Source of the DNA: Neoechinorhynchus agilis
Lineage: Eukaryota > Animalia > Acanthocephala
Length of the DNA: 64,000 nt
Direction of reading: 5' to 3'
NCBI GenBank assembly: GCA_051530055.1
Contig: CM121343.1
Coordinates: 3,690,389-3,754,388 of the forward strand
Below, in pieces: positions 28,955-51,370 of this stretch (within the stretch, counting starts at the first letter, position 1; each line of letters starts with the position of its first letter). Position numbers and translations under genes: made by a program. Below the pieces are notes generated by a model, which was given only the letters and a program-made list of their open reading frames with translations, was not told the DNA's origin and made no database searches.

Positions 28955-29770
28955 AATCAATCTTCATTTCTCGACAATTAACACACTCACCACCTCCCGC
29001 CGAATTCCAGCTTTTGTCCTTCTTCGACCGTCGCCATCACGCTGGCAGCATTGCCCCGTTGTACTGCTAGCGAGATATTTTGTCGAAGGAATACGCCTGC
29101 TCTTGAGTCTCCGGTTGCCTCTCTCAATTTCTTCGAGAGATCCTGGAGCAGAGAGAGTGTCGAGCTGCCGGGCGCTCCATACGTCTCTACCCCAAAGGGG
29201 ACAAAATAGTGAGCCCTCGATAAGTGAAGATATTTCCGTATTTTCCTCCCTTCCGCTGCACTGGCGGCACCACCGGCGATTTCGAGGGAGTAGGGGATGT
29301 TGCTGGCTGCGAGGGTATCCATACACGTGGCGTCCCAGAGAAGGCATTTGCCCTCCCGCCACGGGAAGACCGAAATTCCATCGGGCCTACGGCCGTCTAG
29401 TCTACAGAGGTGGGCGGGTTCCAGGATGTTCGGGAAGTTCGCCGTTCTCAACGCCCGAGAAATTGCGTTATTGATTTCAGAATGGCGTGAGAACCTTCCT
29501 GCTGACCTTCTGCAGACGAGACCGTGTCGCCCGAAAGCATCAACCAAAGACCCACATCGACAGCGATGGGGCGTGCATATCGGGAGACCAAGTCTTAAGG
29601 ATACTGCGATCCTCGTTACCTCGTCAGTAAGAAGAGTTCCCACTGATGCCAGAGGAGCAGCCTTCAACCACGCCCCAGATTCTCGTGTTGAAACTGTCAA
29701 CAGTCTAGCTCGGACGACCCCCATCGCGAGAACCGGAAAGTAGAGAGCTGTAAGCTCTCGCGACAAGAGG
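28955..29770 (-). mobile_element. 5'-truncated CRE-type non-LTR retrotransposon (zinc knuckle + RLE endonuclease, open frame)
   Basis: ORF 28987..29766 contains CRCGSLVDAFGRHGLVCRRSAGRFSRH (CCHC knuckle), RRPDG, LLWDATC.DT, AE.RK.RKY and FVPFGVETYG (PD-(D/E)xK restriction-like endonuclease). Confidence 0.88.
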
Positions 29771-44043: not shown

Positions 44044-45045
44044 ATTGTCGATGATTCGCGATCCTTTTGGTCCGATTAAAGTCTTGATCGCGACCGAGAA
44101 AGCCGTACTACTGAATGGATAAACTAAATTGTAGCAAAATGTCTTTAAAAAAACTTTGAGAAAATTGTCGATGATTCGCGATCCTTTTGGTCCGATTAAA
44201 GTCTTGATCGCGACCGAGAAAGCCGTACTACTGAATGGATAAACTAAATTGTAGGAAAATGTCTTTAAAAAAACTTTGAGAAAATTGTCGATGATTCGCG
44301 ATCCTTTTGGTCCGATTAAAGTCTTGATCGCGACCGAGAAAGCCGTACTACTGAATGGATAAACTAAATTGTAGCAAAATGTCTTTAAAAAAACTTTGAG
44401 AAAATTGTCGATGATTCGCGATCCTTTTGGTCCGATTAAAGTCTTGATCGCGACCGAGAAAGCCGTACTACTGAATGGATAAACTAAATTGTAGCAAAAT
44501 GTCTTTAAAAAAAACTTTGAGAAAATTGTCGATGATTCGCGATCCTTTTGGTCCGATTAAAGTCTTGATCGCGACCCCAGAAAGCCGTACTACTGAATGG
44601 ATAAACTAAATTGTAGCAAAATGTCTTTAAAAAAACTTTGAGAAAATTGTCGATGATTCGCGATCCTTTTGGTCCGATTAAAGTCTTGATCGCGACCGAG
44701 AAAGCCGTACTACTGAATGGATAAACTAAATTGTAGCAAAATGTCTTTAAAAAAACTTTGAGAAAATTGTCGATGATTCGCGATCCTTTTGGTCCGATTA
44801 AAGTCTTGATCGCGACCGAGAAAGCCGTACTACTGAATGGATAAACTAAATTGTAGGAAAATGTCTTTAAAAAAACTTTGAGAAAATTGTCGATGATTCG
44901 CGATCCTTTTGGTCCGATTAAAGTCTTGATCGCGACCGAGAAAGCCGTACTACTGAATGGATAAACTAAATTGTAGCAAAATGTCTTTAAAAAAAACTTT
45001 GAGAAAATTGTCGATGATTCGTGATCCTTTTGGTCCGATTAAAAT
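44044..45045. repeat. Tandem array, ~120-bp unit, ~8 near-identical copies
   Basis: ATTGTCGATGATTCGCGATCCTTTTGGTCCGATTAAAGTCTTGATCGCGACCGAGAAAGCC.. recurs every 120-121 nt; variation is mainly in A-tract length. Confidence 0.97.
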
Positions 45046-45851
45046 CTTAAAGATCTATATTAACGGCTAATAAAAAACTACTATTTAACCAGAAGCATCC
45101 GAATTATTGTGGCTACTTACTCTATAGTAGACCGTGATTTTTAAATACGAATTAGTTTCAGCTCAAATTTTGAAGAATCTCAAGGCGATTAGGTATAAAC
45201 ATGGGACAATTTAAGACACGATGATCGAGATGTCTAAAAAGTCATGACTTTCTAAATGCGATTGGCGGCTACGACGTTTTGATCCATTGCGCAACCCGGG
45301 CCGTAGCAGCAGCAGCGACTAACATCCATTAATCATTTTTAGCAATTGAAGGTAAAACATCCAATTACTTTTGTTCTTCGAGGTTGTGTAAAATGGCCTA
45401 AAGGACTCGTTAAACCATAGAAATCAATCACACATTTTTGATGGAAAGAAATTTCAGGATGTCGTTTAGTTTTGACAAGGACATTCTTGAATCGGGCATG
45501 CAATCGATTTATAACGACCAATGAGTTCGATTATAATGAAGAAAACAAATAAAAGAAAATAACGGTAATTCGGATATTGGTCGTTTTTATCACAAGACAA
45601 AATACGAGATAAAAATATCGGAGATATACATCTTCGTTTTTTTTGCGTCTCAATCAAACCAACCTTTGTTCTAAGTCTTTCATCATATTCGAGACTGAAA
45701 GATAATCCCATTTTTCAAAATTGGGTCCATGGAAGAAAAACTCATTCGCTGACGTTAAGAGGAAGTCGGAGTTCGAATTCAATTACTTAAGCGACAAAAG
45801 AATGGCATTTTTTTCGTTCTAATTTCTTATTTTAAAGATTCTAACTTTTTA

Positions 45852-46560: not shown

Positions 46561-47619
46561 TGCCCAAGAAAAATTATCAAATGAAAAGTGGGATAAAATA
46601 AAATGCTTGTTGTCCAAAAATATTTTCAATATTAATCGGTAAACTTTGACCTGAAGTATAGAGCGCTTATTATTTAATCGTTTGAATTCATTTAGTTTTT
46701 GATCGTTGGCCTTTTTTATCGTGATTTAGCAAGTATCTTTGTTTTGCTTCTTTAAATTGGCGGACTTTTTTCGGCCCAGTTTAGAAGTTGTTTTGGTGGA
46801 TATATTTTGTTTGTTTCCTTTGATAGTTATCCCCATCGGGATTTAAATTCATAGATTTATTTCCCCCCTCCCCCGATATTTCAAGTCGGATAATTCCGAC
46901 AACATTCAAGTGAGATGAAATTTCGGAATTATCCGACTTGAAATGTCGGGGGAAATACTCTTAAGAAAGTATCTGTGACATAGATATTGATTCCCTTTGT
47001 AGCAATATTTCGTCCGTCTAACCGGACATCTTGAAGTCTAAAAATCCGATGAAACATACGAAAGGGAATCAATAAATTAATCTCTATTTTCATTAATTTC
47101 GTAGCGCTTAAACAACTCAAGCGATTGTTATTCTAAAAAGCACGATAAGCTTAATTATACTGTCTAATTTTTATACATTACAAGAAAAAGCGCATGCTCG
47201 AACAAAACTGAAATCAAAGTCCGCTAAAATGACCGAGTAACGGTCAAATCGACAATATGGATCCATAGATTAGAATTAAAAAAATTGTTTGCTGTCGAAG
47301 AAATCCACGAAAAGATCAAATGACATTCTTAAACATTCAAGTAAACGACGAAAATGGGTAACAAGGAAGCGTTCAAATCGATATTTATCAAAATTTACGT
47401 TAAAAGTCGTCGTATATTTTGTGATCCATTATTGCAACGTATCTTTGAGAAAGGTTTGGCTATTCCAGGAAACAAATGGAAGTTTTTATTGGCGATTATG
47501 GATGATTTTTTTGAAAAGAAATTAACATTGATGAGAGAAATATTCACTTTCACAATTTTTTTATTTAATGTATTGATTTTTAAAAACCTCTTCTGTGGTC
47601 GCAGCATCAATAACGTCCC

Positions 47620-47855
47620 AGCTCTGAGCCGGTCTCTTTCGCTGGACAGCTTTGCTTATCGTCTAAAGAAAGTCTTAATCCCGTTGTCGTCTCTAATCCA
47701 ATTTAAATATTTCTACATCATAAAATAAATTTAATTATACTGGCAGCATCAATAACGTCCCAGCTCTGAGCCGGTCTCTTTCGCTGGACAGTTTTGTTAG
47801 TCTTACTTCCGTTGTTGTCTCTAATCCAATTTAAATATTTCTACGTCATAAATTT
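47620..47855 (+). repeat. Two tandem ~135-bp units of a short dispersed repeat; a third unit resumes at 51096
   Basis: GCAGCATCAATAACGTCCCAGCTCTGAGCCGGTCTCT occurs at ~47621, ~47743 and (1 mismatch) ~51117. Confidence 0.9.
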
Positions 47856-48450
47856 TTTTTAATCAATATATATTTATTTTAGCGCTCGCTCACAAACTGT
47901 TATATGCCTAGCCGTCCTCGTCATCAATTGTCGCCCGAATGCTAGCAATGTTGCCTCTCAACACGGCGATGCCGATATTTTTGAACATCGCTGGTTGTAA
48001 CCTGAAGGCGTCGCTTCAGATCCTTCAGAAGTTGAAGAGCCCCGCTACCAAGAGATCCGTAGGTCTCAACCCCAAAAGCCACGAACTCATGGGCTAAATC
48101 GAGGTATTTCGCCGTTTTCCGCCTTTCCACAGTACTCGCTGAACCTCCAGCTTGAACCGCCGAGAACTTGAGATTGCTGGCCGCGAGTGTATCGACACAA
48201 GTGGCGTCCCAGAGGAGGCATTTACGCTCCCGCCAAGAAAATACGGTCACCCCATCAAGTCTACGTCCGTCGTCCCTACAGAGGTTGGCAGGTTCCAAAT
48301 TTTTGGGGGCATGTACCGCGTAACAAGTGCCCGGCTCAGCACCACGATAATTTCGGCATGTCTTGCGAATCTTCCTGCTGATTTTCTACAGATGAGACCA
48401 TGACGTCCCGACGAATCCACATTTGCACCACAGCGGCATGCAAACAATAT
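47856..48450 (-). mobile_element. 3' part (zinc knuckle, RLE, 3' UTR, short A-tail) of a CRE-type retrotransposon
   Basis: CRCGANVDSSGRHGLICRKSAGRFARH, EPANLCRDDGRRLDG, LLWDATCVDT, FVAFGVETYG and ATIDDEDG*, then AATAAA and an A-tract (plus-strand T-run to 47860). Confidence 0.88.
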
Positions 48451-51097
48451 ACACTAAATTCTGGAAAAGGTCAACTCACAAGCAACGCTGATTTCACCTT
48501 CAATAACGGTTTATTGTAGCTTAACAAATAATTTTCAAAAGAAGCCAGTAATATCTCTAAATAAGACCCGAACTTACAAGCAAAAATCTACAAGCAATCG
48601 ACATGTCAACGATTTCACCACCGTCCCCTCGCTTCACTCGGGGCTTAACTATCTCAGCAAACCACCATTCGCCGCACGTCGCACCGCCCAAGCCCGACGC
48701 TGCTGACGCAGGCCACCTCAACGTGCCACCTGTTAATCACGCGGATCACGAGAGGACCGGCGCTGCAAATTCACAAAATCAACTTTGGTCCGAACAACCT
48801 GTAGAGAGCAAGCGGCAAACGGAAATTTCAAGTACTCTGGGAGGTGAGGCCAATGCTGCCCGATATCCGAGGGTCTCAACACATAATTGCCCGGTTTGTG
48901 ACAAGCAGATCAAAATTACGAAATTGGGAGAATTTTGGAATCACTGCCCAAGGAATTCCCGATGTGTTGGTTCCGGCCTTCTGCTGGCAAGCTCTACTCC
49001 TCAGCTCAGTGAATCTCGCCAGAACATCCAAAACATCGTCCATTGCACCCCTCCGTTGCTGGAGATCGTGCGCGTTTTGCCCAGAAACATCCTGAAGCGG
49101 ATCCCAAATGGGCGCTCGATTTCAGGTAGCGAAGAGGTATTCAGCCCTGCTGAGCGACTGTCTCGAGACAAATACCGAGATATCTTGGACACGCCTTTTC
49201 GCATTCCCGAGACTGGTACTTTGTGCTATCTGACGAATCTCTTGTTACCCTCATCAAAAACCGGGTGTCTTCCTTCGACAACTCGTTTGGAGAGGTCCGA
49301 CGCAAAGCTCGCGTTTTTAGGGGAGATTTCTCAAAGCCACCGAATCCGGGCCGAGTTTGAACCCGTTCAGTGACCCAGAGAGTGCCTTCTAAATTCGCCG
49401 ATGGTGAGGCGCAGTTCGCATTCTATCGTCCACCGACGAATTCGCAAGAGATGATACGAAAACTATCCAACTTCTCAGAGAGAAACATCCTCGATCCGCT
49501 GGACATCTAGAATATTCGGAGATGATCCCCTCGTGCAACCTGATAGAATTTTCGGTTGATGTAGTTAGTAAAGCCGTTTCGTCGTTCGCAAATGGGTCAA
49601 CACATGGGCTCGACGGGCTTCCGCCTCAACACCTAAAGGACATGATGTCCTTCTCCGTAGGTGATCCGTCCTATGTTCTCCTGAACGCCTTGACTCGGCT
49701 AGTCGGCGTTTTCTCTGGAGACAACCTGTTTCCCAAAGCGATCGAATTGTTTTTTGGACTTCCCTCTGCGCTTTAGAAAAGAAGGACGGTGGGATTCGTC
49801 CCATCGCGATCGGCTCTACATTGAGACGACTAACAGTCCAGTTCAACTAGGCTGCTGCACACCTTGTGGGGCGGAAGCCATAGTCCACGCACTCCGTACA
49901 TTTGTAATTGAGAACGTCAAACCGCGTGTGATCCTGAAATTAGATTTCCGGAACGCCTTCAATTCCGTTAATCGCGACTCGCTCTTAAAAGCTATCAGAG
50001 ACCACGCACCGGAGGCTTACGGGTATTTTAGAAATTCGTACTGAGCTGCGACCCCTCCTGCATCCTTCCGAAAGAGGCGCTCAGCACGGAGACCCGTTAG
50101 GTCCCATTGGTTTCGCGCTCACAATAAACGAATTAGTGCACTTTCTTGATGCGAAATTCAATGCTTGGTACCTGGACGATGCTACGCTGGGAGGCGATCC
50201 CCAGGTAGTTCTTTGTGACCTGGAGAAAATCAAGATGGGGGCAAGCAAGTTGGGCATTGAATTGGACACAGAAAAATGCGAAATTCCATTCCGTAACATA
50301 GAAAGGAGCCCTACAAAAGACTTAATAAAGCGCGACTTTGAAAATGTTGCACCCGGGATAGAAATGGTCGATTTTGACCGGCTTAAGCTTTTGGGCAGTT
50401 GCGTCTTTGATGGGAATGTGGAACAAGAAATTAACAGCCTTCTAGAGAAATTATCGGTGCTTGGATCACACGAGGCTCTGTTCTTGATCAAGAATACCCT
50501 CTTCATCCCAAGTTCCTTTATGCTCTACGCACGGCGCCGTTTTTCAAGCACAAGGCTCAGCTTGGCAAGCGAGATGACAGATTGAAAGACTGTCTCGAGC
50601 AAGTTTTAAATGTCCAGCTGTCAGAAGAGGCATGGCGACAAGCATCCTTGCCTGTATCTTCTGGCGGGTTGGGTATCCGGAAAACAGCAGACATATCCAT
50701 GCCCGCATTTTTAGGCTCCTATGAGGGAAGCGGAGTTCAGCGCATTCTGAAATCTACTTATCGTATTGATAGGCATTTTGAAGGGGGAATCAGTGAGTGG
50801 TGTACACTGACCAACTCCGATCAAGTACTTGTGAATGACCAAAAACAATCTGTGTGGGCCTCTCGTCGCAAGAGTTCAAAGCTCTCTCTTATCAGACTCA
50901 AGCGACGACGTTGTCCGTGCCAGGTTGTTGGCAGTCTCCACTAGAGAATCAGGTGCTTGGTTGAACGCGGTCCCGCTAGCATCTGTGGGTATTCTCCTCT
51001 CCGACGAGGCAATAGGAGTCGGAGTTTCAATGAGACTTGGACTACCGATGTGTCATCCCCACCGTTGCTGCTGCTGCGATGCAAATGTGGATTCATC
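48451..51097 (+). mobile_element. 5' part (UTR, N-terminal Zn finger, reverse transcriptase) of a decayed CRE-type retrotransposon
   Basis: ATG 48603; CPVCDKQI..GEFWNHC..C.GS; GLDGLPPQHLKD; GGIRPIAIG; QLG..TPCGAEAIVH; KLDFRNAFNS; WYLDDATLGG; LPVSSGGLGIR; ends at HPHRCCCCDANVDSS. Many frameshifts and stops. Confidence 0.9.
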
Positions 51098-51370
51098 ATT
51101 AAATTTAATTATACTCGCAGCATCAATAACGTCCCAGCTCTGAGTCGGTCTCTATCCTCCTAGGAAAATCTTACTACTTCGGTTGCTGTCCTTAAGAATC
51201 GTTCACTATTCCCCTTTTGAGGCGGACGCATTTAAAACCCGCTGGTGATGAGTTCATCTCCGTGATGCAATAAAGACACGACAGAATTCTACCGTGAAAG
51301 TGGCATTCTTCGGCACTTTACGATTTTATTGCGTAAATGTTCATTTAAGAGAGTAAATTTTGATCACGAT

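Follow-up and report, generated by a model that had tools for sequence, protein, structure and literature searches.

A retrotransposon copy with an inverted 5' part in Neoechinorhynchus agilis: a twin-priming-like footprint in an R2-like element

Anatomy of the insert and its target site

The stretch of DNA analysed here, referred to as the window, comprises 64,000 nucleotides of the acanthocephalan Neoechinorhynchus agilis (C3:3690389-3754388, contig CM121343.1 of assembly GCA_051530055.1); positions are those of the window unless a contig or locus is named. It contains a 3.25-kb insert within a local repeat. Reading of the sequence and of its open reading frames (ORFs) indicates an old and dead copy of an R2-like retrotransposon, the front 2.6 kb of which is flipped relative to the tail. 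An initial annotation of this DNA had assigned the part from the zinc knuckle to the tail to the minus strand and the part from the 5' untranslated region (5'UTR) to the knuckle to the plus strand, an arrangement that was confirmed by the sequence, the ORFs and a BLAST search of the whole assembly. While the layout stood, its boundaries were refined. Homology of the 3' part is clear to 48438 (previously 48450), and that of the 5' part from ~48461 (previously 48451).

On its left side, the insert is bordered by unit 1 and the left part of unit 2 of the local repeat (47596..47845, plus strand; ~2.3 units of ~135-140 bp), which served as the target. The left copy of the target site duplication (TSD), TCATAAATTT, follows at 47846..47855 (plus strand); TCATAAA is certain, and uninterrupted paralogous units hold the sequence once. 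The element ends in a short A tail (47856..47860, minus strand) that lies in a run of eight Ts (47853-47860), three of which may be part of the TSD. In other family copies, the tail measures 5-9 A. The 3' part (47861..48438, minus strand) is 0.58 kb long and comprises a CCHC knuckle, a decayed restriction-like endonuclease (RLE) domain and a type-A 3'UTR, with 80-90% identity to the 3' ends of colinear copies. In element sense it begins with TGCCGC, at 48438, and its knuckle codons at 48409..48438 (minus strand, 29-30 nt) form the left arm of a junction duplication that aligns with 51066-51097.

The head-to-head junction consists of 22 nt (48439..48460, plus strand) that may be either a 5'UTR-like motif or filler; the first 12 nt resemble a 5'UTR motif in another copy (L012), and no second occurrence of the full 22-mer was found. 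The inverted 5' part (48461..51097, plus strand) contains the 5'UTR, a zinc finger, the reverse transcriptase (RT), a linker and the knuckle up to GGATTCATC, and reaches as far 5' as any other copy of the family. Its ORF starts at 48603, a single zinc finger is encoded at 48888-48965 and the RT region spans ~49458-50442 (all plus strand), the latter giving a weak Pfam RVT_1 match in the window copy. The right arm of the junction duplication (51066..51097, plus strand) again consists of knuckle codons and carries an extra TGC. It runs into the right TSD copy, TCATTAAATTT (51096..51106, plus strand), the first TC(A) of which overlaps the element sequence as a microhomology of 2-3 nt. The local repeat resumes with the start of the next unit (51107..51150, plus strand), which matches the beginnings of units 1 and 2 at 94-95% identity. 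In this arrangement, the breakpoint-proximal knuckle end (51097) adjoins the right flank, the 5'UTR end (~48439-48461) adjoins the 3' part and the tail adjoins the left flank.

The TSD, previously a candidate, proved to be real, as TCATWAAATAAATTT occurs once in unit 1 and once in a paralogue at C3:4.109 Mb. Both of these are uninterrupted and read CTAC(A/G)TCAT(A/T)AAATAAATTTAATTA. At the insert, the left flank ends in ...CTACGTCATAAA followed by Ts, and the right flank starts with TCATTAAATTTAATTA directly after GGATTCA of the element. With TCATAAA(TTT) on the left and the sequence given above on the right, 8 to 11 bp are duplicated. Because TCAT.AAA is present on both sides of the insert and only once in intact units, the duplication measures at least 8 bp; it would amount to 10-11 bp if the target unit was without one TAAA, as the right flank suggests. 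A single TSD encloses both segments, and there is no extra flank between them. The insert had also been described as interrupting a ~135-bp tandem repeat that resumes behind it. The resumption holds, and the tandem array amounts to only ~2.3 units, without a TRF call. In the genome, this local repeat has one partial paralogue.

At the inversion point, a knuckle stretch of 29-30 nt is common to both parts, with TGCCGCTGCGGTGCAAATGTGGATTCGTC as the family majority state. Such an overlap had been noted before, at ~35 nt and with ~5-6 differences, and was found to be smaller, with four substitutions and one 3-nt indel. Relative to the family majority, the 3' part departs at one site, and the 5' part departs at three sites in addition to the extra TGC. 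These differences between the arms fit the age of the copy (5 events against ~3 expected, P = 0.18). CpG decay was rejected as their cause, as changes of CpG type account for 11 of 142 mismatches and show no enrichment.

The age of the two parts was compared by their divergence from the per-site majority states of ~25 other copies. Departures from these states number 113 in 2489 sites (4.5%) for the 5' part and 29 in 538 sites (5.4%) for the 3' part (Fisher p = 0.43). Equal divergence had been named in the initial annotation as a check on a common origin, and the two parts are indeed equally diverged, so that a common origin was not refuted by it. A neighbour-rank test across the breakpoint gave rho = 0.26 for the window copy, which lies within the span of 0.08-0.51 for colinear copies, on a star-like tree that leaves this test with low power.

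Element type and family copies

The identity of the element was examined in better preserved copies of the family. The ORFs of two copies, L002 and L004, matched the Pfam family RVT_1 (E = 1.6e-19 and 1e-15, respectively), which was the sole Pfam family found. Numerous unnamed proteins, including some of Lepidoptera, a barnacle, a tardigrade and a sponge, are homologous to the C-terminal 359-aa ORF of L004, and the motifs C..C..H..C, RH, E, RPD and WD.T are conserved across 45 homologues. Searched by sequence against PDB and Pfam, this ORF gave nothing significant, only one chance-level ribosomal match (E = 0.2). A structural model of the same 359 residues was built with AlphaFold (AF2) from the alignment of homologues (pLDDT 92.4) and compared with the PDB using Foldseek. 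At E ≤ 0.001, the only matches were seven chains of R2 proteins, from silkmoth, zebra finch and turtle (E = 2e-7 to 6e-6, TMq 0.56-0.62).

The 256-aa N-terminal ORF holds a single zinc finger, and a search of it for an apurinic/apyrimidinic endonuclease (APE) domain returned no Pfam family. Judging from the ORF layout, there would be no room for such a domain, as the RT ORF follows directly after the N-terminal ORF and the element totals ~3.2 kb. With R2 proteins as the sole matches to the modelled fold and no APE domain detected, the evidence supports an RLE-type retrotransposon without long terminal repeats (non-LTR) and with R2-like architecture. We found no sign of site specificity: the flanks of ~30 copies are unrelated to one another, and the copies are dispersed and do not lie in spliced-leader genes.

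To place the window copy within its family, the region was searched against the whole assembly, and a colinear coordinate system of the element was compared by BLAST with 57 loci. The 5' and 3' segments are colinear in the remaining ~55 copies examined, many of which are 5'-truncated or internally deleted. This signifies that the window copy is truly inverted relative to its family. The survey of copies for 5' inversions that had been suggested with the initial annotation thus yielded one clear case in ~55 copies of this old family.

Several further loci were considered as inverted copies and rejected. At L026:2745-2864, an inverted duplicate of 90 nt adjoins the 5' end of the adjacent copy, which is itself ~12% diverged from the window copy. 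The inverted piece is 100% identical to its own copy, and has the appearance of a recent foldback or template switch at the DNA level. L011:3747-4110 is a head-to-head pair in which a near full-length minus-strand copy faces a 5'-truncated plus-strand 3' fragment ~85 bp away; each member has its own 3' end, indicating two insertions or a double target-primed reverse transcription. The inverted piece in L054 measures just 33 nt and is too short to judge. Neighbouring pieces in L019 and L054 belong to other families (63-68% identity).

A search of the genome for RLE domains returned 3182 candidates, the longest open frame among them measuring 1221 aa. They include a younger R2-like family of ~64% protein identity, which has many uninterrupted frames up to this length. 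Intersecting the RLE list with a list of RT matches gave ~60 colinear pairs and one head-to-head pair of the geometry seen in the window copy, consisting of an RLE match at C3:6496919-6497428 (minus strand) and an RT match at C3:6497777-6498604 (plus strand), 349 bp apart. This pair, recognised from domain matches, is a candidate 5' inversion in a younger related family. The C3:6.497 Mb locus was not listed in a search with the linker protein. Large 5' inversions are rare here.

A probable single insertion event and its alternatives

We consider it likely that the insert arose in one retrotransposition event of a dispersed RLE-type element, which ended in a 5' inversion by a twin-priming-like second priming. 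One insertion event is favoured because a 3'-truncated plus-strand piece that ends on the TSD cannot result from two independent insertions, and because an inversion after insertion needs a second break within ~0-2 nt of the boundary between element and TSD. Twin priming had already been proposed in the initial annotation. The geometry, the tail, the TSD and the junction duplication fit this proposal; the template may have been one RNA molecule or two.

A sequence of steps that would produce the observed structure can be outlined. The endonuclease would nick the plus strand after ...TCAT(T)AAATTT, whereupon the T-rich 3' end could pair with the RNA at its short A tail and prime a first cDNA (47856-48438) that halts ~0.58 kb into the element. 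Before completion of this cDNA, the other strand would be cut 8-11 bp away. The resulting overhang, ...TGA-3', could base-pair over 2-3 nt with UC(G) within the knuckle codons of element RNA, either on the same or on a second molecule, and prime a second cDNA there, which would run for ~2.65 kb to the 5' end of the RNA or very near it. Finally, both cDNA ends would be joined head to head. We propose that the ~30-nt stretch is present in both parts because the first cDNA extended past the site of second priming. That the cuts came in this order, and that RNA was the template, is what we infer from this arrangement.

A number of observations weigh against a single event of this kind. The 22 nt at the internal junction are of uncertain origin and have no explanation in the scheme, and the microhomology at the second priming site is just TC(A), that is 2-3 nt. 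A search of this assembly for an empty site, a haplotig or an un-inverted allele found none. The usual TSD length of the family is poorly known, since among ~30 other copies, surveyed by exact and local matching, plausible TSDs were found only in L050 and L056 (7-8 nt, both 5'-truncated copies), and the remaining copies surveyed are too degraded or lack clear ends. A Gly/Asp codon (GAT/GGT) at which the two arms differ is polymorphic among copies too. The L026 duplicate described above shows that DNA-level inverted duplication occurs in this genome. Moreover, the whole reading, including the timing of second-strand nicking, is drawn from a single fossil copy that is ~5% decayed.

To these points is added a partial duplicate, L013 (L013:1501-2895, C3:3771880-3773274), which lies 30 kb to the right and outside the window. 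A piece of it at C3:3,771,880-3,773,138 matches the final 1263 nt of the window 5' part at 99.4% identity, and the two have ~52 of 54 derived sites in common, together with a frameshift deletion of 5 nt. The piece stops at GGATTCGTC(GG), within 0-2 nt of the point where the window 5' part meets the TSD. There it joins, through a GG microhomology, an old 136-nt piece of the 3' region, with ~335 nt missing. This 3' piece is 88% identical to the window 3' part and has none of the derived sites of that part. L013 is probably a later DNA-level copy, produced for example when ectopic repair or gene conversion used the window locus and the non-homologous tail was removed where homology ended. We favour this origin since the lineage had died by then, the two loci lie near each other and no more than 2-3 changes are private to each. 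Otherwise, the shared end point would have no explanation, and the 5' part could then have a separate history.

Such a history is at the centre of the alternative that survives best. In this composite origin, a 5'-truncated copy of 0.58 kb, of a common kind, was in place first and another RNA or DNA source supplied the 5' part, as in break repair that copies a different element, so that the parts would stem neither from one RNA nor from one moment. It draws on the derived sites, frameshift deletion and end base that L013 shares with the window 5' part, on the lack of any relationship beyond family level between the L013 3' piece and the window 3' part, and on the polymorphic GAT/GGT codon in the arms. 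However, both parts are equally diverged and the TSD encloses them without extra flank between, and a 3'-truncated plus-strand piece ending on the TSD would still need priming from that overhang. The nearness of L013, at 30 kb, and the common frameshift fit a later DNA-level copy better. We therefore regard a composite origin as unlikely.

Alternatively, a colinear minus-strand copy may have inserted normally and its 5' 2.6 kb may have been inverted later at the DNA level, by a staggered-break inversion or through recombination of short inverted repeats. The flipped segment lies between 30-nt arms that constitute an inverted repeat, and a staggered break would leave such a duplication; the 90-nt, 100% identical inverted duplicate in L026 is an example of a DNA-level event. 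The required position of the second break argues against this, as we estimate that a random break would fall so close to the element 5' end and right TSD boundary in ~1 in 1000 cases. If the arms existed beforehand, they would represent an inverted knuckle fragment at the TSD, which itself needs a second priming event. A later inversion thus appears quite improbable. A mis-join inside the repeated element, conceivable for a dispersed repeat whose structure was judged from the assembly, is very improbable, given that both junctions are unique sequence contexts, that the flanks continue one local repeat unit with the TSD and that the other copies are 7-20% different, which makes collapse or mis-join unlikely.

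A twin-priming footprint in a single fossil, left by a mechanism already known from human L1, is in our judgement the best available account of the insert and not a proof. Whether RLE-type long interspersed nuclear elements (LINEs) can twin-prime in vivo, through an early second-strand cut that primes on element RNA, and whether this is recurrent though rare in the R2-like families of this genome, is a wider question on which we find the case evenly balanced.

Relation to known systems and further observations

In human L1, 5' inversions are found in about a fifth or more of copies. The frequency of large inversions seen here is lower, with one clear inversion in ~55 copies and one candidate among ~60 RT/RLE pairs of related families. 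Twin priming in L1 yields an inverted 5' segment and a non-inverted 3' segment with the tail (Ostertag and Kazazian 2001, as summarised in PMC10760644). The insert in the window resembles such L1 copies in that the breakpoint-proximal end of the inverted segment lies at the upstream flank, one TSD encloses the whole and a short duplication is found at the inversion point. It differs from them in having a C-terminal RLE instead of an APE, an A tail of only 5-8 nt and an inverted part of almost full length (2.6 kb). When assayed in cell culture, 5' inversions occurred almost exclusively with L1 in human cells (PMC4245944), and twin priming awaits experimental validation even for L1 (PMC10760644). 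Among the papers searched, none describes twin priming in an RLE element, and the only one to mention both twin priming and a restriction-like endonuclease refers to twin priming in L1; absence from this set of papers is no proof.

With R2 and R2-like RLE LINEs (structures 8gh6, 8ibz and 9dou), the element shares the order of zinc finger, RT, linker, CCHC and RLE. Its copies are dispersed, unlike those of R2, and are not specific for ribosomal DNA. In the model for R2, second-strand cleavage comes after first-strand synthesis and after a template jump (PMC6895275). The insert described here would instead need the second cut, and the use of its 3' end on RNA, before the first cDNA was complete; if correctly read, it was an aberrant event. 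TSDs are known from other RLE LINEs, with 9 bp in R8 and 13 bp in R4 (PMC6895275).

The CRE clade (CRE1/2, SLACS and CZAR), to which the initial annotation had assigned the element, is likewise of the RLE type and has an N-terminal zinc finger. CRE1/2, SLACS and CZAR insert specifically into spliced-leader genes. The copies analysed here differ in having unrelated flanks and no spliced-leader specificity, the target in the window being a local repeat with one paralogue.

The completion of integration, comprising second-strand cleavage, second-strand priming and formation of the 5' junction, is the least understood part of the non-LTR cycle. R2-type elements are under development as gene-insertion tools. 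A TSD-bounded 5' inversion in an RLE element, if true, would show this aberrant outcome to be independent of the APE/L1 machinery and would constrain the order of events assumed for R2-type elements. A genome with thousands of related copies, many of them with long open frames, is a good place to count 5' inversions properly.

Further features of the family were recorded in the course of the comparison. The family 3'UTR occurs as two types, A (...GGCTAGGCATATAACAGTTTGTGAGCG..., with 17 matches in the genome) and B (...GGCGAATAATTATGTTTAT...), and a 20-nt indel polymorphism lies upstream of it. In L002:1285-1530 and L057:511-1384 (C2:14.51 and 14.35 Mb, respectively), a ~215-nt segment around the CCHC knuckle is repeated two to three times in tandem. 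The repeat in L002 is in frame and results in a doubled knuckle within a 452-aa ORF.

Three segmentally duplicated copies, L007, L010 and L028 (C2:3.29-3.40 Mb), sit in a cluster of several family copies and lose homology ~6 nt downstream of the window breakpoint (GTCGAGGAC, then unrelated DNA). A breakage hotspot near the knuckle, drawn from the window end, L013 and these three copies, was considered and rejected: L013 is probably derived from the window copy, which leaves two independent events and no significance.

A further locus, L037, carries an 89-bp insert at L037:2660-2790 (C3:~6976660) that ends in an A run, is bounded by a perfect 13-bp direct repeat (AATTTTTAGTGGT) and has an internal 11-nt inverted repeat; the insert could not be placed in any family. 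Elsewhere in the window, a 5'-truncated copy of the younger R2-like family lies at 29020-29718 on the minus strand. Finally, a 120-bp satellite of 8.4 units with 98% identity occupies 44044-45048, 3 kb to the left of the insert.

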